Origin: Wallemia ichthyophaga EXF-994
Taxonomy: Eukaryota; Fungi; Basidiomycota
Direction: 5' to 3'
Length of the DNA: 32,000 nucleotides
Assembly: GCF_000400465.1 (NCBI RefSeq)
Contig: NW_008806275.1
Coordinates: forward strand, 648,156-680,155
Numbering within the stretch: position 1 is the first letter of the stretch; every line of letters begins with the position of its first letter. The translations under genes were made by a program, and so were the position numbers. Shown in pieces: positions 2,193 to 17,874 of this stretch. The notes beneath the pieces were generated by a model, which searched no databases, had not been told where the DNA came from, and saw nothing but the letters and a program-made list of their open reading frames with translations.

Positions 2193-3044
2193 ATGTCGAC
2201 AAAAGTATTTTATATCACAGGCACCTCTTCTGGATTCGGGAGAGACTTGGTATTGGATTTGAATCAACGTGGCCACAAAGTCATCGCCACCGCGAGATCT
2301 CTTCACAAGATTGAAGATCTCGCCAAACTTGACAACGTCAAGATACAGCAGCTCGACGTTACAGATAAGCCAGCAATTCTCCAGCAGAAGATCGACGAAG
2401 CCATCACATTCTTTGGCAAGATCGACGCACTCGTCAACAACGCCGGCTATTCACAGACCGGTTGCTTCGAAGAGCTCACTGATGCTGAGATCAGGAAGGT
2501 GTACGACACCAACGTCTTCGGAACTGTCAACTTGACTAAGGCCATACTACCACACTTCAGGTCCACGGAGACGGAGAGCACGATCTGCACCATCACCTCG
2601 CTGGGCGGAACTGTGTCATTTCCTGTGTGCTCCGCGTACACATCCAGCAAATTCGCTCTTGAAGGCTTTTTTGAGGCGTTGGATGGCGAGTTGAAAATGT
2701 CACAGCAGCCAGTCAAGGTCCTTATAGTGGCCCCGGGGGCATTCAGGACTGAATTCATGGGCAACATCCAGAAGTCTAAGGAAGACATCGACGCGTACAA
2801 GCCCGTGAAGGATTACATTGATACGTCGTTCAAGCAGTTTTCAGTCACCGGGGGTGTCCCTAAGATCGGCGCCAAGTTGATGGCGGATGCGATGCTGAAG
2901 GAAGGCTCTGCGGAGGGCAAGGAGATTCCGCTGCGCCTGCCCATCGGCTCGGACGCGGCCAAGTACATGCTCGACAAGTTCAAGAGGGAGTCTGAGGTGT
3001 GCGAGGCGTGGAAGCCATACGCGGCAGAGGCGGACGCGCAGTGA
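2193..3044 (+). CDS. Classical short-chain dehydrogenase/reductase, 283 aa, intronless
   Basis: TGTSSGFG cofactor motif, NNAG, catalytic S and YTSSK (YxxxK), VAPGAFRT. Confidence 0.95.
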   Translation: MSTKVFYITGTSSGFGRDLVLDLNQRGHKVIATARSLHKIEDLAKLDNVKIQQLDVTDKPAILQQKIDEAITFFGKIDALVNNAGYSQTGCFEELTDAEIRKVYDTNVFGTVNLTKAILPHFRSTETESTICTITSLGGTVSFPVCSAYTSSKFALEGFFEALDGELKMSQQPVKVLIVAPGAFRTEFMGNIQKSKEDIDAYKPVKDYIDTSFKQFSVTGGVPKIGAKLMADAMLKEGSAEGKEIPLRLPIGSDAAKYMLDKFKRESEVCEAWKPYAAEADAQ

Positions 3045-3142: not shown

Positions 3143-3230
3143 TGACAGGAGAGGGATTCGAACCCTCGCTCTTTCGAACACGGATGCTGTCGCCTTAACC
3201 GTGCGCCTTAGACCACTCGGCCATCCTGCC
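3143..3230 (-). tRNA. tRNA-Leu(AAG) with an 8-nt intron (3185-3192)
   Basis: Minus strand: acceptor GGCAGGA/TCCTGTC plus discriminator A; D arm GCCGAGTGGTCTAAGGC; anticodon stem CACGG/CCGTG with TT-AAG-G, intron CGACAGCA, then T; variable arm TTC-GAAA-GAG; T arm GAGGG-TTCGAAT-CCCTC; a T4 tract lies just downstream. Confidence 0.93.
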
Positions 3231-3314
3231 TATCCTGAAATAAAACCTTTGCCACATTATAAACCGTTATTGGAGCGGGAGGTTCTGGCAAAGCAGATGT
3301 GAGGCAGCGCGGCG

Positions 3315-3483
3315 CCCATTTACGAGTTTTTTTTTAAAACAGCAATTACGACGCTAGTCAAGAAACGCTCCCAGTAAATTCAGCACTCTCTTTGACTTCT
3401 CATGCTCTAAGAAGTATTGATGGACACAGTTTAAACATTTATCGTTTTAACAATATATTTAGATTTCATCATCATCATCATCA
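3315..3483 (+). mobile_element. Very short 5'-truncated or non-autonomous non-LTR retrotransposon copy with (TCA)6 tail and target-site duplication
   Basis: 3415-3482 is 63/68 identical to the 3' end of the LINE remnant (7394->7327). It is flanked by the direct repeats AGGCAGCGCGGCG (3302-3314) and AGGCGGCGCGGCG (3483-3495). 3321-3396 shows patchy similarity to the LINE ORF2 end and 3' UTR. Confidence 0.75.
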
Positions 3484-3969
3484 GGCGGCGCGGCGGAAGC
3501 GTATGTGCATTTGTGCAGGCGGTTGGGCGTTTCCCCTTGGGCGACTGTTTGCATCCGCGAGCACTTTTTTGGGCGGGCTTGACTCCCGCTGCGTCGCGAA
3601 GGGAGCGGAGTGCAGTACTGTACGCGGGAATGCGCGTTCGATTAGGGTGCGAAAATGTGTTTTCTTATGCTATGGCGTCATAGCGCCCCTCCCTCTGTAC
3701 CTTCACATCATACTTTCGAATCAGAGGTTCGTGCAGAGAAGCCTTGAATATACCTTGAATTAGAATATTACTACTACTACTCAACAATGTATAGTTAATT
3801 TTACTACCAACACTATTTTATTTTGAGGCACCGCTAAGGAGAGTCCGACGCGCTCTGCTTCTGAAGCGCTTTATTAGCACTCAAGCGTATCACAACACAC
3901 AACACACAGTACGCACAACTGGTCGTAAACGTAAATGTATCGTGCGTCGCGTAATCTATAAGCACAGCT

Positions 3970-4889
3970 CTAGTTGATGAGCGAGACTGTGAATATGCTC
4001 ATGTACCCAGTTACTGGAGGAGTGGTTAGTAAAGTAGCGCCAGTACCATCACACTCACATAGCCCGGTGAGCTTCTCGACCGGAGTATGGAAGTACATGC
4101 AAGTGACGAGCAGCATCCAGATCCACAGCACGAGCAGCGCAACTGAGGAATAGACGGCCACTCTGTGTACTGCACTGGCGCCCTTCTGCAGAGGAGCCTT
4201 CTCGTTTCTAGCAGAGGCAGAAATAGAATCCGCACCGCTAAAGTGGGCAAAGCACGGCTTGAGAGTGAGGTAGATGATGTAAGCAGAGAGCATGAGGAGG
4301 AAAGTGTGCCCAGAGACGTCATGTCCACCAACCCACTTCGCCGATGTGGGTGATGTGGTTGTTGTGGACGCAGATGCAGGAAGCAGCTGGGGATAGCACT
4401 CGAGGTGGTTGACAGGGACAAGGAGGGGAGTTGCTGGAGTGCCACCCTCGATACCGGCATTGATGTCTTCGATGACGCACTGTGCGCCTGTCATCAGCCA
4501 CAAACGGTGGAGGAGACCGTCACCGAAGAACCAAGTTGTGCTGTAAAGTGTGAGTAAGTGTACCATACAAAGCAGACAACGCACAACAAGAACCACGAGC
4601 TGGTGGCTGCTACCCAGCGCAAACCACTAACAACGCGCCAACGCTGACTCGTGCTGCGATCGTCGTTGGGCGCTGTGAGTACCAAAGAGAGAATAGAAAC
4701 GCTCGTCCATCCCCACGCCTTCTTGACGAAGAGCTTGTTGAAGACGTTCTTCCTTGCAGCAAAGTAGGCACCAGATTTGGCGAGAGAGCCGGCAGAGCTA
4801 GTATCCTGGAACGTGTCGTAGTAGACGCTGTAAACAGTGCCTAGAAGTACAACTGCCGTGAGTAGAGATATGAAAAGAAGACTAGACAT
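3970..4889 (-). CDS. SCS3: FIT family protein (Scs3/FIT2-like fatty acyl-CoA diphosphatase), ~276 aa; exons 4889-4585, 4540-4059, 4013-3970
   Basis: The spliced frame is continuous. Motifs: KNVFNKLFVKKAWGWT, FTTWFFG, GHDVSGHTFLL and YFHTPVEKLTG (both conserved His). Introns of 44 and 45 nt. Confidence 0.88.
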
Positions 4890-5203
4890 GGTCGTACGTG
4901 TGGAAGAACGACGGCGTGCGGGAGTGTTTATGAGAAATCTAGCGCCGATGATACCATTCATCGCTGTCATCAATGCCTTTGATTGGACGCGTCGGTTGTA
5001 TTACAATGCATGAGCTGTATGGAGATGGCAGTGCGGAGTATTCAGAAGATGCGATGACGCCTCTAAGCCTCTAAACCTTTATGCTTCTACTCGGGATCTG
5101 CAGCTGAATTTTCATTTTTACGATATTGAGCACATCAGCGTTATTTCTCGCTTAGGTCATCTCAGCGCAGTGCTTCTTCCACTGCAACCAACACGACAAG
5201 AAA

Positions 5204-6982
<1,779 letters not shown>

Positions 6983-7326
6983 GGTGGTTTTTATAGACAA
7001 TTTTAGATGTATTACATGCAAGCAGCTTTTCATGTTATTGAATGACTGGAATTGGGTTGCTAAAATCAAGCATTCCTTCGTTGAATGAGTATTCCTTTTT
7101 GAGTGGGCGGTATTAGCGGGATTTACATTGGCATTAGTGGGATTTACTTACCAATCATGAAGGTCTCTACTCACAGAACTTGCAAATCACTCAACCTTCT
7201 TTATCAATGGCTGCCCCACCGTCTATTGCCGGTCCGCCGCCAGCTGAATCTGCCGAGTTTGCCTCTGAAAGTCCAGTTAGCGTCACGCCTAGCGATTCCG
7301 CGTGATTCCATCTCTTGCTATCGATC

Positions 7327-8280
7327 GATGATGATGATGATGAAAACTAAATATATTGTTAAGACGATACATGGTTAAACTGCGTCCATCAATAGATAGA
7401 TAGAAAGAAATCATCATATATAGTCAAGAGTGTTACAGCGATTAATAATCTTCGCCTATCTATACTTCTTGTGCATTGATAGATGACGATTGTAGTGACT
7501 CAAAGGGATGCGGTTCTTGGCACGTTTGCCGTAAATTGGGAGGTAACTACGTGAAGCTACCGGAAGCGCGCGGGTGGGTGCTGAACTGGTTTTTGAAGAA
7601 CTCATAGAGAGATTTGAGAGCTTCTTTATTTGAAATCATGTATTTCATCTCTAATCTTAACCCAATCCATATATCCTCCTCCTCAACGATAATCTTGCTT
7701 GATCGAACTTGCTACATCTGAAAATCCTGTGTGTGATACAGTCTACTTCATTGCACTTGCTGCAAAGTGGTGAGTCAGACAATTTGAATCGGAATCGGTA
7801 AGACTTGGCAGTAGGGAATTGGCCTGAGGGGATCTATGTGGCCACACTTCGCGTACCACGGGGAAGCTTGTTGAGCATCCTGGCCGCCTGTGTGAAAGTC
7901 ATTCTACCCATTGCTCTCTCTGCATCTTTCGACAATGGTCCTGGAAAACTACGTGCATCTACTCTCAAGAGAGCAGTGTGTCGCTACGGAATGCGGAGAG
8001 AGCCGGCTTGAGAATGAAGTCAACAGAGTTCCTGTTTTCGCCGGTATCTTTTTTTCCTTCATGGGCTTCTTGATCGGCAAGTTCGTTGCCTTCCACATTC
8101 ATGTGACCCGGGATCCACATCAGGTACGTAATTCAACCGTATAGCCGTTGAGCTTGTTCAACAACAAGATAATTCTACTGATAATGTACTGTGAGGCTTT
8201 GGACGTCTGTGAGTGCACGATTGCTGCTAAGACCGCCTGGCTGTCTGTGTATCAGAATAGACGGTAAAATTGCAGAGGTG
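7327..8280 (-). mobile_element. Degenerate 3' part of a non-LTR retrotransposon (RNase H + CCHC, Tad1/I-group-like ORF2 end, 3' UTR, (TCA)5 tail); the 5' edge is uncertain and may reach ~8400
   Basis: Minus-strand frames give FTVYSDTQTA, QYIISRII, WIPGHMNVEGNELADQEA (WIPGH at 8117-8103), SPLCSKCNEVDCITHRIFRC (C-X2-C-X7-H-X4-C, 7764-7714) and ISNKEALKSLYEFF, with a stop at 7549-7547. Several stops and frameshifts interrupt these. Confidence 0.88.
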
Positions 8281-8622
8281 AAACTTTTGTACCAGTAAGT
8301 TTTTATACTACCCATACACGTATGCAGCAATATTATAAGTCAGGTGGTTCCGATATCTCAGGCTGGGAGGTAGTATTGCATGGCTTTTTATATGAATGTG
8401 TTTTTATGTATATATCGGTTAAGAAAGATAAAGGATTACAAATTCTGTGCTGGCGAGCGCGGAATCGCCGGAGCAAATATTCAAAGGTGGGGAGAGGAGA
8501 GTAGGTGAGGTGAAGTCAGGTGAGTAGGGGGAGGGTCAGTATTTGAGTTGTATGCTTTGCTATTGGGACAAGACGGCTTGCTAAGATTATTAATAGATTT
8601 GCTCTGGACAGCAAATATCAGA

Positions 8623-8696
8623 TCTCCGATGGCGCAATTGGCTAGCGCGTCCGACTGTTAATCGGGAGGTTGGTGGTTCGAGCCCACCTCGGAGAG
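8623..8696 (+). tRNA. tRNA-Asn(GTT), no intron
   Basis: Acceptor TCTCCGA/TCGGAGA plus G; D arm GCGC-AATTGGCTA-GCGC; anticodon stem TCCGA/TCGGG with loop CT-GTT-AA (GTT 8657-8659); T arm GGTGG-TTCGAGC-CCACC; T5 at 8701-8705. Confidence 0.97.
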
Positions 8697-11402: not shown

Positions 11403-14400
11403 TCAAGTATTGACTACCCAGACAACATTCGCAGGCCTCACGAATAACGCTTTGTGAGACTGGTTTGGTGTTTCTTGAACGGGTGGTTCGGAGAAAGCAG
11501 ACAAGCCAGAAGACTTTCTAAGACCATTGCCGCTGCCATTGCCATCACTCCTCTTGTCAATGCGACTTTGTAAGTTGAGGCTTGGGCGTGGCTCCATTGC
11601 ATTCCACTTCTCTCCTTTGATCTGGAAATGGCTTGTTAGACATATCACGAATAGAGACAAAAACACACATCAAAATAGCGCCTATCTTGAAGTATCCCAT
11701 CGTTCCATCCAGACACCGAATTCAGCTTCTCTTGGGTAATCTCCTCGGAAGGAATCTCGACGCCGACCCAGGGACCTAATTCATTAGCCAGTGTACCCAA
11801 GTATCTGACTAACGCTCTAAATCTAACAAAAGAGCTTGATTTACCTCTGCGTTTTGGTTTACAAGCAACAATGCAGGGTATACCAATACTCAGAGCGACG
11901 CCGTTAGGTTCAACGACTCTCCTTGGCGGTGGAATAGTGGGTGCTTGTGTGCTTTTCGACGGTGACTTTTGTGTGCTGTTCGATGAAGATCTCTGTGTGC
12001 TAATTGTTGGAGATCTTTTTGTTTCACTAGTCGGTGATGGCATGTCGGGGTGTTCGACAAGTGAAGCCATACTCATCCGAGTCGGAAGTGAGCGTTCAGT
12101 GAGCGATAATGAAGGAATACGCGACGGAACACTTTCATTGTCGTCGTCGTCTGTTTCTATGCCTCCCACAAAGCTCAGACTTTTGAGACTGTTGAGGTTA
12201 CTCCATCTTTGTGTCGATTTCGGAGAGCTTTTGTCACTATTGGATAGTGTTGCACGCGGTGTAGAGTTGACATCTTCTACGATCTCTTCCATCTCACTAA
12301 GTGAGGTGGAGTGCGGACGACGTGACTTTTTCTGGGGTGTTTGAATGTCACCTATTTGCTCATTTTCCTTTCCTTCGTCTTGCTGCTCGGAGGGAAGTTG
12401 GTCTATTCCTTGTAATTCTTCCTTGTCTTCCTCCTCTTCCATCTCCTTGCCCTCTCTCTGAGGCAAGGCAGCAGACATAGTCCTCGCGTCATTTTTACTG
12501 CCTCCCTCAAACTTGGCGGCTAAAGACCTTACACTACTCACCGGTTGCGACTGAGGGCGGGGGCGGCGATGGGGGCCATCAGCGTTATTCGTCATGGTAC
12601 CCCCTTTCTTCTCTAGTTTTTCTTTGTTGCTTTTCGGTGTCGAAGATTTACGCACGCTTATCGCATGTGTAGGGATAAGACTGGGAGAAGGAGTGCTCAT
12701 CCGTCTATTGGCAGGTGGGGTGAGTAGACTGGTGTCAGGTTCAGTACGCGTGCCGGTACCCATACCGGTGCTATTTCTTTGTCTGTGCTTCTGATTCTGC
12801 TCATCACGACTACTGCTTCCGATACTGCCTGCGCCACTCACACCACTCGAAAGGGAGTGATTGCGCATGAGTTTGGGTATGTGTGAGCTATTTCTTCCAT
12901 CGCGAGTACTTTGATTCTGCACGCTTTGGACGCTCTGGCTCCGTCTGTGGATATCTTCTGGGCTTTTCGGTTGGGTAGTAGAAGAGGACGTGCGGCTTGG
13001 TTTGGCGCCGAAGCCGGAGCGTACTGAAGGCGGTGTTGATGGTGAGTGTGAGTGTGAGTTTGATGTTGAAGATGAGGCTGAACTATACGCTACGGGACGT
13101 CTTCCGGGGTATTTGCTAGGAGTATTTTGACTGCTTTGCCTGGTTTGCGTGGTTGGCGTAGTGCGAGGGGATGAATTGCGCATCGCACTCGCTGTCGATG
13201 TACCGTTTGGTGTAGACGTGCTCGCGCTTAGGCTACCGGCGCGACGAGGAGGCATCTCGCGCGATACAGCATCTCTAGAAGGACTGGCGCTGACTGAAGC
13301 AGTACGAAATGGAGTGGACGTCGTACGTGTGTGCGTGTGAGTGGGTGTGATAATATTCTTGCTACTACCACCACCAGCCGCATTGCGAATCGTACCTGCT
13401 GCACTGCGCAATACACTCGCTCTCAACCCATCACTGTCATCTTTACGTCCTGCGTTGACCGGTTTCCTCACCACCCTGCGAGTTGTTTTTGGTGGGGAGG
13501 GTGAGGGTGTGTGGGGGGGTGCCTTAGGTTTTTGGGCTGCATTCATTTGGGGTGTTTGAGAGGTTTGTTCAAGTAGATCACTAACTGGCAAGTCTAGTTC
13601 TGTTGTTTGGTGTGTGACTCACTTGTTAGCCATCCACTCTCACCAAAAACGCTCTCACTCACCTATGCTCAGCTCATCGAGTGCCCAGTCATCAAGCAAA
13701 CCAAATCCACCTGCGGGATGCACATTCGAGAGCTTGACGTTCATCCACCTATTCCTCAACACTCCCAGAATCCTCTTGCGCTCCTCTTCGCACGTCTCGC
13801 GCGTGCTAGGCGTCAAGCATCTTCCGCCGTCCTGCTGGTGCTGTTGGTGCTCGTGCTCGTGCTCAATTTCCTCCGATCTGCGCAGCACTTTTTGAGTAAA
13901 GAGCTGGTAAACCAAGGCGCAATTATCGTCGTTGAGTATCTCCACAATAAGTTCGAGCAAGTGATCGAACGAGTCAGTAGAGAAGCCGACGCCGCGGACG
14001 AGGTCCCAGAACGACGGTGAGTCGAGAACGCCGGCGAGATGTTCGCTCAGCACGCACTTGATCTGAGCATCGACTGCGTCAAGCATGCTGTGCAACTCAT
14101 TCACCCATCCGCTATAACGCATCTCATTAGCAAGACGCTCTCTGGCACAAGCCACGCCACGCATTGTGCTAATCAGCGTCAAAGCCCCAACACCCTCGTT
14201 GACACCCTGCACTAACTTTCGACGCGTCACAAGAGGCAGCTCCGCTACATCCCTGTTCCACATATCTCCGAAGGCTTTGGTGCATACTTGGATAGCTGAA
14301 GCTTCCAAATCGGGCTCGTTCGTCGTTTCTCTCACTGCAAAGGCGAGGATGCGGGGTATACGAGAGAGACATTGTCGGTAGTTGGGTGTTTTGTGCGCAA

Positions 14401-15383
14401 ACCTAAAGTAGCTGGCCATCTCGGCTATCCTGGCTACAATCTGCTCCTTGAGTGGCTGGACATCGAGATATTCGGCCGCATCGTACACCTCGAAAGCAGT
14501 ACCGAGGTCGAGGGTGCGATTGGAAAAAACGACCGTTCCAGCGTAAAGATAACCCAACGCAAAATGGAGAGAAGCAGGGGTAAATGGTGGTTGGTGGAGA
14601 GTAATTGTGCGCGGTGCTCGTGCGTCCGCGTTTGCGTTTTGAACGGATTCGAAAAAGCCACTGCTGGTGGAGAGAATGTTGGCAAAGTAAGTAGACCGCG
14701 AGGCGAGGATGGCTCTATGGGCAGAGAAGGTTGCGTCTATTTCGTCATTGTCTTGTTCGTCAGTGTCAGTGTCTGTGTGAGCGTGTGCGTCCGTAGCCTG
14801 GTCGCGATCATCACCAACGAGTATAATCTTGACGTCTGAAAAGAGAGTGGATCTCCACATGTACACCAAATCAAAGCGCATCTTCTGCCGACGTTCGTCG
14901 GTGCTTTGTGTATCGACGAGTGGCTGGTCGAATAAAAAATCAAAGCTGTCTCCATCGTCTGCCGTGTATAGGAATTTGAGTGCAGATGAGAGGATAGCAG
15001 GGGATGTTGATTGTGGGAGAGTGAGTGTGTTGCACGCTGGATTTGGCGACGGAGATGGAGATGGAGATGGAGATGGAGAGATGGTCGTGTTATTTGAAAA
15101 TTCGTTTGCAACGCCTCCAAGCCGTGGTAGATACTTGCTCAAGAATTGGCTTGGGGCACGGGCGTATAAGATTGCTACAGGGTCGTGTAAATATAAATAT
15201 TAATATTAATACACACTCACCCTTATGCGCATACACCAGTTCATCCTCACCGCCGTCCTGTTTCCAGCTTATATCGCTGTATCTCGATTGGGCGTTGGAG
15301 AATAAATCAGCGAGATCACTGAGCCAGGCTTCTTCCGACTGGCGCTCGCTGTCCCTTGCTTTGCTCTGCCAGTTGACTGACAT
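11403..15383 (-). CDS. Uncharacterised ~1274-aa protein: tandem BTB/POZ-like domains, long S/T/P/R-rich disordered region, C-terminal CAP-Gly domain; exons 15383-15221, 15174-13663, 13599-11669, 11621-11403
   Basis: BTB-like segments YSDISWK...VYAHKAILYARAP and FSDVKIIL...FSAHRAILASRSTYF. CAP-Gly-like segment VRYLGTL...PWVGVEIP...GWNDGILQDRRYF...ALFVRP. Three introns join the ORF-track fragments in frame. Confidence 0.82.
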
Positions 15384-15570
15384 GATGGTTGTTTGGCTGA
15401 GAGAGCTGAGAGGCAAGCAAACAGACAAACAAAGACAGCGGGTATTATTGGACATCAAGTGAACATTATCTAAACTCAGGGCATCGCTATTACATCAAAT
15501 GCATTTGCCCCTTAAAACTAAAACAAATTGAAACAGATGAGATAACGTGTGGTAAAATATTCCAAGGCTT

Positions 15571-17242
15571 TTATAGCGGGTGACTGTGGCTATTGTGGCT
15601 GTTGTGGCTGTTGTGGCTCTGGTTATTACTCCATTGCCTCTCGCTCCTACGCCCATATATACTACCAGACGGTGATGTCAGTGCCACAGCGGGCAGCTCA
15701 TAGCTTGCGAACGAAGGCACCGGTTTACGGGGCGGGACGTGGCTGTAGTGAGAGTTGTAAGTGGTGTTGCTGCTATTTTGTCTGTTGTGGGTGTATTGCG
15801 GCTGTGAATGGGTGAAAGTGTGAGTTTGATTAGGAGTGTGATTGTGAGTTTGACTTTGAGCTTGATCTATATTGCTTAGGGTTGGAAATTTCTGATGCTC
15901 TGGCTGCTCTGGTGTGCACTTATGCACCACACTGACAGCCTGCCCAAACTCTCTACCCTTCACTTCATTTCCATCTGAATCCTGCGCGCCCCTCTGGCTG
16001 TTAACAATAGTACTACCGTCTACATCTTCAATGCTCGACAACTTGCTGAACTGTCTCCTGTCCGAGCTGTCTAGTCTGTTGACTCCTTCTGTGTCAAGTT
16101 GAGGGTGTGATTGTGAATGTGAATATGAGCGTGAAAGTGATTGCGAGAGTGAGAGAGAATGCTGCGACCTGCCACGCGAGTTAGAAAGCCACGAGCTGCT
16201 ACTTTCGTCGAGGGACCGCGACGACAGAGTGGAAGAGTGTGAGTGTGATTGAGCATGTGAATGAGAGCATCTGCCAAAGAACCTTGAGAGTCCATCGAGG
16301 CCCCACACACTAAGCATTTCTCTTTGCGTAGCAAATATGACAAAGCTAGACAAAGAATCCGTAGCGGTAAGAATAGCTAAAGATTTATGAATAGTTTTTG
16401 TGCGATACTCAACACAAGCAACGACGAGTGTCATAATGATCCACACTAAATAAAGGGCTACGCGGAGGAGAATATCGCCATTAACTGCATGACGCTGCAA
16501 CTGTGTCTGAATCTTTAGCTGTCTGCGCGCGCTCCGCCCGAGTGAGAAGAAGAGAGCAAGTGCCCACACGGCAAAGAGGACGCAGAGGGCGAGGAGAACG
16601 ACGACGATGAGCATTGACGATTCGTGAATCGAATTATGAGACGGGTATATCGTGCAGTAGAAGTAGTAGCGTTGCGCGTATACCGGTGCCGCACGCGCTA
16701 CGGCACAGCTGTACGCTAGCACAGGTAGCACTATCAGCCATGGAAATGATAGCAGGAGCGGGTCCCAGGTAAGCAAGCGCGCGAGAACTTTCACAGGCTC
16801 AGCGGCAAGCACCTCAGCAAGCACGGCCCAGATCTGGCGCGGTTGGATTAGATATTGAGACACCTTACATACAATCACCACACACCTTCATCGTCAGCGC
16901 TAGAAGCGTACCACCTTGCATTAAAGGAGCGGCTATCGAGAGACACGCACTCGCTATGCGCAATCCGTCGCTAGGGTGCTTGTTAAGTGGCTCACCGGCA
17001 AATATGAGCAGCGTATAGCATACTGATGACGCAGCCATAGATAGGAAAAAAACCCAGCTCGATGAATGGCGGTGTATGCAGGTGGAGAGGATGATTGTCA
17101 GCGCAAGTAGTACGTGCAGGGGGATGGCGAGCATGTGCAGCACGGCGAATGCAACGACTTGTCGTAACGGCGGGACATCGGGGAGATGTTGGAGAATGAG
17201 ATGCGTGGCAACGTCTTCAGGGAGACCTTCTAGCTTGTCCAT
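15571..17242 (-). CDS. Orphan 7-transmembrane, GPCR-like protein A, ~539 aa; exons 17242-16886, 16833-15571
   Basis: Seven hydrophobic segments, YCTI after TM4, TM7 ending FVIFATQREMLSVW, and a long Ser/His-rich tail. It is a clear paralog of 17875-19576 with the intron at the same position. Confidence 0.75.
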
Positions 17243-17874
17243 GGCGTGGTGGAATTGATGAGCTGTGACCAGTGTAACTTATCGCGCACAGACGCGGAGT
17301 TCTGGGCACAGATGCGATTAAAATAGGTTAAAAAGCTGGGAATTCTGCAGCATCTGTATTAAGGGAGAATTAGGAGGTGTATCATAATTGTGCGATTCAG
17401 AGATTGTTGGCGAGAAGCCATGGTGGTTAGCGGAGAGGAGATGAACGGAAGATAGACTGAGTGTGAGCTGAATATGAGGTGGTTAATGGATGCATACTAT
17501 GCGAAACTTTATTTACGCTCGCCAAACGCATCTCGATCACTGACGAATAGCGGCGGCTAAATCAACATCCGAATATGTGTATGTATAAATGCATAGTGTA
17601 TAATTATCTGACTAATATTTTATAACATGTTGTGCGAGGTAATCTTAGTAACGAGAAACGGCAATAGGAACGGCAACAGCAGTGGTGATACAACCAGCAT
17701 CAACGCCTATTCTGGCGGCTGTGAGTGGGGATTGTGAGTTTGAGTATTACTGTGAACGGGGCTACGTGGAGGGCTGTGTTGTATTAAATCAGGGGTGTGA
17801 GCGCGTCTGTGAGCGTCAGCCTGTATATGCTGGCTCTTCTTAGCGTGTCGATGTGCCAAGCTATGAGCACGCTG

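Follow-up and report, generated by a model that had tools for sequence, protein, structure and literature searches.

Two tRNA genes with LINE copies upstream

Wallemia ichthyophaga is a salt-loving basidiomycete. We analysed a 32,000-nucleotide stretch of the genome of strain EXF-994 (contig NW_008806275.1, positions 648,156 to 680,155; hereafter the window), which contains two tRNA genes and, upstream of each, a degenerate copy of a non-LTR (long terminal repeat) retrotransposon, or LINE (long interspersed nuclear element). Both tRNA genes had been proposed in a first-pass annotation of the sequence and are borne out by ARAGORN and Rfam (Table 1). The tRNA-Leu(AAG) gene, a type-II gene with a long variable arm, was missed by ARAGORN in default mode, and its anticodon was assigned by hand reading. 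It is the target of LINE copy 1 and of an older repeat, Y, and the tRNA-Asn(GUU) gene is the target of copy 2. As originally described, both copies point away from the tRNA gene, with their truncated 5' end facing the tRNA 5' end.

Copy 1 comprises the last codons of open reading frame 2 (ORF2), a 3' untranslated region (3'UTR) with an internal deletion, and a 68-nt terminus (3415-3482) that includes a (TCA)n tail (3466-3482). It is flanked by a 13-bp target-site duplication (TSD) whose two repeats match at 12 of 13 positions, and whose tRNA-proximal repeat lies where the first-pass annotation had placed it. Copy 2 carries frameshifts and stop codons throughout, and its Pfam RNase_H match is weak. 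In tblastn it is matched by Tad1-like ORF2s and by LINE proteins of both W. ichthyophaga and W. mellicola, and its DNA is 86-91% identical to copies at two other W. ichthyophaga loci, L003 and L005. The C-terminal half of its RNase H domain reads ..YTDSQAVLAAI.., WIPGHMNVEGNELAD, and its Cys motif is CSKCNEVDCITHRIFRC. No TSD was found for copy 2. Its 5' edge had been put at ~8280, perhaps ~8400; the copy is recognisable, with an edge secure only to ~8260, and hints of an extension to ~8520 are not significant.

The spacer between this edge and tRNA-Asn may contain the decayed N-terminal half of the copy 2 RNase H domain, which would give a junction near -85; this is unproven. The spacer holds an FLTD motif 57 codons upstream of YTDSQ and a weak PPW-like match at 8437-8523 (E 0.056). 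A profile of the pre-RNase H and N-terminal RNase H regions of five ORF2s judged Tad1-like gave non-significant matches only. The spacer has no repeat match elsewhere in the compared loci, and in the W. mellicola reference precisely the equivalent region of the element is lost in an N gap.

Positions 3415-3482 and 7327-7394 are 93% complementary over 68 nt, with the (TCA)n end on both, and no alignment was obtained between the two copies upstream of these 68 nt. The 100 nt of copy 1 without a match in copy 2 proved to be the ordinary 3'UTR of the W. mellicola 'B' subfamily. Copies 1 and 2 therefore represent two subfamilies, and for this reason share the 68 nt alone; the subfamilies are ~50% identical in the ORF2 C-terminus and have the terminal 68 nt and the tail in common. 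The initial description of two copies of one LINE family thus holds as to the reality of both, by their terminus and tail, and needs amending as to subfamily. The possibility that copy 1 is a short interspersed element (SINE) with a head of its own was rejected, its 'head' being ordinary LINE 3'UTR by comparison with W. mellicola.

Table 1. Features of the window and of the loci compared with it. Distances are in nt between the element and the tRNA 5' end; L002 is the window locus.
Feature	Locus	Position	Strand	tRNA gene and distance	Evidence or content
tRNA-Leu(AAG) gene, 8-nt intron	window	3143-3230	minus		Rfam RF00005 48.3 bits; ARAGORN intron mode, same coordinates
tRNA-Asn(GUU) gene	window	8623-8696	plus		ARAGORN; Rfam 63.4 bits
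Copy 1 TSD, tRNA-proximal repeat	window	3302-3314		tRNA-Leu, -72 to -84 from 5' end	aggcAgcgcggcg (also given as aggcagcgcggcg)
Copy 1 TSD, distal repeat	window	3483-3495			aggcGgcgcggcg (also given as aggcggcgcggcg); doubles as first bases of repeat Y
Copy 1, severely 5'-truncated LINE, 'B' (W. mellicola-like) subfamily	window	3315-3482	plus	tRNA-Leu, 84	84% identity to W. mellicola LINE 3' end
Copy 2, decayed 5'-truncated LINE, 'A' subfamily	window (L002)	7327-~8260	minus	tRNA-Asn, <= ~360	translations, tblastn, DNA identity
Copy 2, (TCA)n tail	window	7327-7343
Copy 2, 3'UTR	window	7344-7546			~200 nt
Copy 2, end of ORF2	window	~7547
Copy 2, Cys motif	window	7714-7764
Copy 2, C-terminal half of RNase H	window	~7986-8260
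Spacer, recognisable copy 2 edge to tRNA-Asn	window	8261-8622	minus
Repeat Y, GC-rich, unclassified, ends in (TAC)4	window	3483-3785	plus		aligns to L008 9712-9935
ATP-sulfurylase gene	window	5393-6982			exact or near match to W. ichthyophaga protein
Short-chain dehydrogenase gene	window	2193-3044			exact or near match to W. ichthyophaga protein
LINE copy	L003			tRNA-Lys(CUU), <=217
LINE copy (L005b)	L005/L006/L007			tRNA-Phe(GAA), 71-85
L005a, B-type 3' fragment	L005	6739-6988		second tRNA-Phe, 82
Decayed ORF1-bearing 5' portion	L005	~6990-8226	minus	tRNA-Ile(AAU), 75
LINE copy	L008			second tRNA-Leu(AAG), 582
3'UTR scrap	L008	8614-8650		intron-containing tRNA-Ala(UGC), 333
Polymorphic LINE insertion, W. 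mellicola	L012	3661-6127		tRNA-Leu(AAG), 84
Older LINE scrap, W. mellicola	L009-L012			tRNA-Leu(AAG), 138

Filled and empty alleles in W. mellicola

The region of the ATP-sulfurylase orthologue was compared in four W. mellicola strains (L009-L012). Strain CBS 633.66 (L012) carries a 2,467-bp 5'-truncated LINE that is missing from the other three. The insert starts within ORF2 between endonuclease and reverse transcriptase (RT), includes an assembly gap, and ends with the Cys motif, stop codon, 3'UTR, 68-nt terminus and (TCA)n. It is bounded by a perfect 13-bp TSD, GGTAGAAGCGGTC (3648-3660 and 6128-6140), and the empty alleles of L009, L010 and L011 have a single copy of this site and no insert. 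The 5' end of the L012 tRNA-Leu(AAG) gene lies at 3576, so that the TSD spans -72 to -84, the interval occupied by the TSD of window copy 1; the element again points away from the tRNA gene. An older 3' scrap lies further out in all four strains. At least one W. mellicola insertion is thus polymorphic, and the family has therefore been recently active. The empty-site alleles that the first-pass annotation suggested seeking in other strains were accordingly found in this species.

For copy 2, we also looked for an empty site by cross-species alignment, and found that the W. mellicola spacer between ATP-sulfurylase and tRNA-Asn is unalignable beyond ~9 bp from the tRNA gene. In W. hederae (L015), LINE termini directly follow ATP-sulfurylase, as in the window, and the contig stops short of any tRNA-Asn. 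These 3' termini (11885-12017) have a (TAC)n tail replacing (TCA)n. The same contig has a 31-nt duplicate of the tRNA-Leu 5' end (7544-7574), 105 nt upstream of the intact tRNA-Leu. In L012, an 890-bp stretch is duplicated around a 20-N gap (2443-2462 and flanks) in CBS 633.66 only, which probably arose as an artefact of scaffolding.

Other copies in W. ichthyophaga

Further W. ichthyophaga loci were ascertained by protein searches with the stitched translation of copy 2 and with a profile, and 10 kb flanks were taken. Both searches returned W. ichthyophaga proteins exclusively, namely six short 'hypothetical proteins' at four loci. At all four, a tRNA gene on the opposite strand lies 60-590 bp upstream of the LINE. 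An all-against-all BLAST of the loci revealed three further insertions upstream of unselected tRNA genes (L005 6574, L005 8302 and L008 8175). Altogether, LINE debris was found upstream of 8/8 tRNA genes in ~84 kb of W. ichthyophaga DNA, and no LINE-related sequence was found away from tRNA genes in these ~84 kb. The pattern seen at two tRNA genes in the window, from which tRNA-gene targeting had been proposed, thus recurs at every further W. ichthyophaga locus fetched, and the proposal is supported.

The W. ichthyophaga strains are ~99.8% identical (~0.2% differences), and a comparison between them revealed no large indels at the LINE sites. Empty-site alleles were therefore not obtained among these strains, and the copies examined in W. 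ichthyophaga are all old, decayed and fixed. A second LINE fragment in L008 (10136-10367; ..LPRATRCLATQLRSGHFPTTKSYRYRFKLTDS), better preserved and of the W. mellicola-like subfamily, adjoins the older one and is cut off by the end of the contig, which suggests that the assembly broke at a repeat and that W. ichthyophaga possibly has younger copies.

Repeat Y lies upstream of both tRNA-Leu(AAG) genes, which are 98.9% identical between the window and L008; in L008 it sits between tRNA-Leu and the abutting LINE fragment. Y matches no Rfam family and does not resemble the W. mellicola LINE. In the window, copy 1 inserted into Y, which itself probably represents an earlier insertion, its edge facing the tRNA having stood at ~-74 until then. 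Another repeat is common to L008 (9417-9556) and a metagenome contig, L014, at 87% identity. In the metagenome contig it adjoins a Ty3-like capsid gene (2703-2842 and 1593-2570 for the two), between the tRNA gene and the LINE. The upstream flanks of Wallemia tRNA genes therefore collect the remains of LTR elements as well.

Distance and orientation

At the five junctions that can be placed, 71-85 nt separate the element from the tRNA 5' end, and at the two cleanest, in two species, the TSD occupies -72 to -84 from the mature tRNA 5' end. Orientation is head-to-head at 12/12 copies with a tRNA or tRNA-like gene upstream. Where insertion was repeated at one tRNA gene, the newest copy lies nearest the tRNA and older debris is displaced outward.

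The 9.6 Mb genome of W. ichthyophaga has 1.67% repeats, 7.08 Mb of exons (~74%) and 11.55 kb of tRNA (Zajc 2013, PMC3849046). From these figures we derived by our own arithmetic a null of ~140 tRNA genes in ~1.8 Mb of non-genic DNA. Under this null, a random intergenic insertion falls within 600 bp upstream of a tRNA gene in the right orientation with p ~0.02, and the result at all four protein-ascertained loci has a probability of ~3e-7.

Architecture of the element

An RT-based search reached a near-full-length copy in W. mellicola CBS 633.66 (L013 7012-12601). It consists of a 26-nt T-rich 5'UTR, ORF1, endonuclease, RT, RNase H, Cys motif, 3'UTR and tail, with domain matches to Exo_endo_phos_2 (1e-15), RVT_1 (1.7e-29, with a YADD motif) and RNase_H (3e-6). 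Its ORF1 is homologous to the ORF1 remnant of L005, at whose end CCHC knuckles lie. The copy is flanked by a TSD of 11 bp, AAATTTTTAAT, and adjoins a tRNA-Thr-like gene. The full-length copy that the first-pass annotation had called for is thus available in near-complete form; N gaps, frameshifts and stops mean that no copy is intact. As read from these sequences, the element is ~5.5 kb long, with an ORF1 bearing CCHC knuckles, an ORF2 encoding an AP (apurinic/apyrimidinic) endonuclease, RT, RNase H and C-terminal Cys motif, and a (TCA)n tail.

The presence of AP-endonuclease and RT in one ORF, without LTRs, is that of an APE-type (AP-endonuclease-type) non-LTR element, of which the window copies are collinear 3' fragments. 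The truncation point differs at every locus, tails are (TCA)n and TSDs measure 13, 13 and 11 bp, all hallmarks of target-primed reverse transcription (TPRT). With RNase H downstream of RT and a C-terminal Cys-His motif, as in Tad1-like elements, the element is by its architecture a candidate member of the I group. In copy 2, the stretch covering RNase H and the Cys motif aligns with full-length ORF2s judged Tad1-like, and the RT N-terminus is 50% identical to the metagenome ORF2 P0038 and 30-39% identical to named proteins, all from arthropods.

RNAalifold predicted no structure, such as a conserved hairpin, in the 68-nt terminus across nine copies; the conservation of this terminus is of sequence. 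Pattern scans for the 3'UTR and the conserved 3' terminus returned no further copies from metagenome contigs of the Joint Genome Institute (JGI). Two distant relatives (43% RT identity), on transposon-rich metagenome contigs (L016 and L017), have no tRNA nearby, and the trait is therefore not shown outside Wallemia.

A permuted tRNA-like gene

The tRNA-Thr-like gene beside the near-full-length copy (L013 6817-6909, JH668247.1, minus strand) is circularly permuted. It reads as a 3' half (TGAGG..GGTTCGAATCC..AAGGCGCA), a 21-nt linker, a 5' half (GCGCCTTTAGCTCAGGGGTTAGAGCGCCTCACTCGTA) and a T8 run. When the halves are joined, ARAGORN calls a canonical tRNA-Thr(CGU). Weak cmscan matches were obtained to YrlA and to cyanobacterial tmRNA (transfer-messenger RNA), with alignments that put the T arm before the D arm. 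The LINE lies 91-102 nt upstream, as if this gene were bound by RNA polymerase III (Pol III) factors. Permuted tRNA genes are not known outside some algae and a single archaeon. Elsewhere in L013 (17170-17395), LINE 3'UTR and terminus come after a stretch resembling a tRNA 3' half (..AGGTTCGAATCC..), an arrangement that may represent either a chimera of SINE type or a fragment that has been rearranged.

Other features of the window

Paralogous short-chain dehydrogenase genes in the window are 72-81% identical in DNA (1-111 with 2932-3042, and 757-974 with 2201-2418), and the longer flank of the locus has three adh_short genes in tandem. Positions 13036-17757 contain GT-rich repeat families of 12-nt period (GTGAGTGTGAGT-like), dispersed over 5 kb, which are probably coding or of low complexity.

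Probable targeting and its alternatives

We consider it very likely that this Wallemia non-LTR family selects its insertion sites by position, at a set distance upstream of tRNA genes, and not by DNA sequence. The first-pass annotation had itself named survival bias as a real alternative. In that case insertion would be random, and copies would survive only in the dispensable DNA beside tRNA genes of a genome about three quarters coding. The compactness of the genome and its scarcity of repeats, cited above, lend themselves to such an explanation, as does the age of the fixed W. ichthyophaga copies, which has left time for selection to filter. However, selection on sites would yield neither a window of 71-85 nt at five junctions nor head-to-head orientation at every copy with an upstream tRNA, and it would not account for a young polymorphic insertion lying exactly at -72 to -84. 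The other intergenic spacers in the ~84 kb sampled are also free of copies. Fixed distance, fixed orientation and a polymorphic insertion with its TSD at that position together mean that survival bias is not sufficient, and we regard it as improbable.

Still less probable is hitch-hiking, in which a few ancient insertions would have multiplied together with tRNA genes through segmental duplication or gene conversion, and the pattern would reflect growth of tRNA families and not targeting. Two gene pairs could be read in this way: the tRNA-Phe genes of L005 are 98.9% identical with a B-type fragment upstream of each, and the equally similar tRNA-Leu(AAG) genes of the window and L008 both have repeat Y upstream. 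Yet the 82-85 nt spacers between tRNA-Phe and LINE are unalignable while the LINE fragments themselves are ~80% identical. At least six tRNA species have been hit (Leu, Asn, Lys, Phe, Ile and Ala), truncation points vary between copies, and the W. mellicola insertion has both a TSD and an empty allele.

Recognition by the endonuclease of a motif upstream of Wallemia tRNA genes, in the manner of R1, R2 and Tx1-type LINEs, has precedents among non-LTR elements at tRNA genes (NeSL-1_TV, LIN15_SM and LIN25_SM; PMC4640811), but it is equally improbable here, as upstream spacers are unalignable between tRNA genes or between species and the three TSDs (AGGCGGCGCGGCG for copy 1, GGTAGAAGCGGTC for L012 and AAATTTTTAAT for L013) are mutually unrelated, which argues for positional and against sequence-specific targeting.

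Several observations count against targeting to a fixed position. The sample is of ~14 insertions in ~200 kb from three species and one metagenome contig, restricted to fetched loci, and part of it was ascertained through the LINE itself. Junctions are imprecise at copy 2, L003 and L008. The near-full-length L013 copy lies outside the interval of 72-84 nt, next to a non-canonical gene, and a pair of W. mellicola fragments (L013 16903-16926 and 17270-17395) has no recognisable tRNA upstream. In the metagenome contig L014, the LINE is 2.1 kb from the tRNA gene, with Ty3-like DNA between them. No LINE is detectable upstream of the orthologous tRNA-Asn and one tRNA-Ala of W. mellicola. No intact ORF2 was recovered, which leaves present-day activity unproven, and the link to TFIIIB or TFIIIC made below is by analogy alone.

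Positional targeting would operate as follows. Integration would proceed by TPRT, with a first nick near -72 on the tRNA-sense strand priming cDNA synthesis from the (TCA)n tail, and a second nick 11-13 bp further upstream. Like TRE5-A ORF1p, a protein of the element may recognise the position through contact with TFIIIB or TFIIIC in the Pol III pre-initiation complex. The insertion site, ~30 bp further upstream than that of TRE5-A, would lie just beyond the expected TFIIIB footprint. We lean, with modest confidence, towards a broader proposal: that Wallemiomycetes, independently of dictyostelids and of the LTR elements of yeast, evolved an RNase H-bearing I-group LINE tethered to the Pol III pre-initiation complex, which inserts at a spacing of its own, with one nick near -72 and the other near -84, and remains mobile in W. 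mellicola. It would be the first known tRNA-targeting non-LTR element of fungi, and its insertions could serve to footprint Pol III-occupied loci, one of them being the circularly permuted tRNA-Thr(CGU) gene.

Comparison with known systems

Position-specific integration upstream of tRNA genes is a textbook safe-harbour strategy in gene-dense genomes. One of the two closest parallels to the Wallemia element is TRE5-A of Dictyostelium discoideum, an L1-group element that inserts 47 +/- 3 bp (PMC5391098; range 40-54 bp, PMC5911963) upstream of tRNA genes and whose ORF1p contacts TFIIIB (PMC5911963). Both are non-LTR elements with ORF1 and ORF2, living in compact genomes at a fixed distance upstream of tRNA genes. 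In both, the element 5' end faces the tRNA 5' end, copies show 5' truncations and TSDs, and insertion has occurred repeatedly at one tRNA gene. By its narrow upstream distance and strict orientation at the loci fetched, the Wallemia element would belong in the TRE5-type functional class, at a distance unlike the 47 bp of TRE5-A: its 71-85 nt place it ~30 bp further upstream. It does not belong to the TRE5/TRE3 lineage, since that is defined by an L1-group ORF2 of order APE-RT-HC in which RNase H is missing. RNase H is present in the Wallemia element, which also has a (TCA)n tail and a fungal host, whereas TRE5-A lacks RNase H and has an amoebozoan host.

The first-pass annotation knew of no RNase H-bearing fungal LINE of this habit. 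We found none for fungi in the literature searched, but RNase H-bearing tRNA-targeters are known outside them, namely NLTR-A of D. purpureum and NLTR-B of Polysphondylium pallidum (PMC5006619). Compared by description only, these share with the Wallemia element an RNase H domain downstream of RT and a location upstream of tRNA genes. Unlike it, they insert at 2-6 bp (NLTR-A) and ~50 bp (NLTR-B), and both are dictyostelid. NLTR-B is the other closest parallel and, like TRE5-A, lies ~30 bp nearer to the tRNA gene than the Wallemia element does.

Among fungal LINEs, the Tad1-like/I-group elements (Tad1, MGR583 and CgT1) have the same domain order, APE-RT-RNase H-Cys motif, and CCHC knuckles in ORF1; the I-group clades are the RNase H-bearing ones (PMC4640811). 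The literature searched holds no description of tRNA-gene targeting for Tad1, MGR583 or CgT1, and the Candida LINE Zorro3 shows no tRNA association (PMC1965478). The safe-harbour logic is shared, in compact fungal genomes, with Ty3 and Ty1 of Saccharomyces cerevisiae and other fungal LTR elements, which are tethered to the Pol III machinery (PMC5911963). In contrast to the Wallemia element, Ty3 and Ty1 are LTR elements that use an integrase and not TPRT; Ty3 integrates where transcription starts, and Ty1 within a ~1 kb window. In a 2018 review (PMC5911963, Table 1), the tRNA-targeting non-LTR elements are dictyostelid only, and the fungal examples are all integrase-using LTR elements. No report joining Wallemia with non-LTR elements was found in the literature searched, within which the Wallemia element is probably the first example in fungi of a non-LTR element that targets sites upstream of tRNA genes.

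Wallemia LINEs explain assembly breaks and spurious 'hypothetical protein' calls beside tRNA genes. In W. mellicola, which can be cultured and has a genome of 9.8 Mb, the polymorphic insertion suggests an experimentally tractable system. If our reading is true, a fungal LINE that follows the orientation rule of TRE5-A at a different spacing would represent a third independent origin of this habit, and would make possible a direct comparison of how the TPRT machinery reads the Pol III complex.

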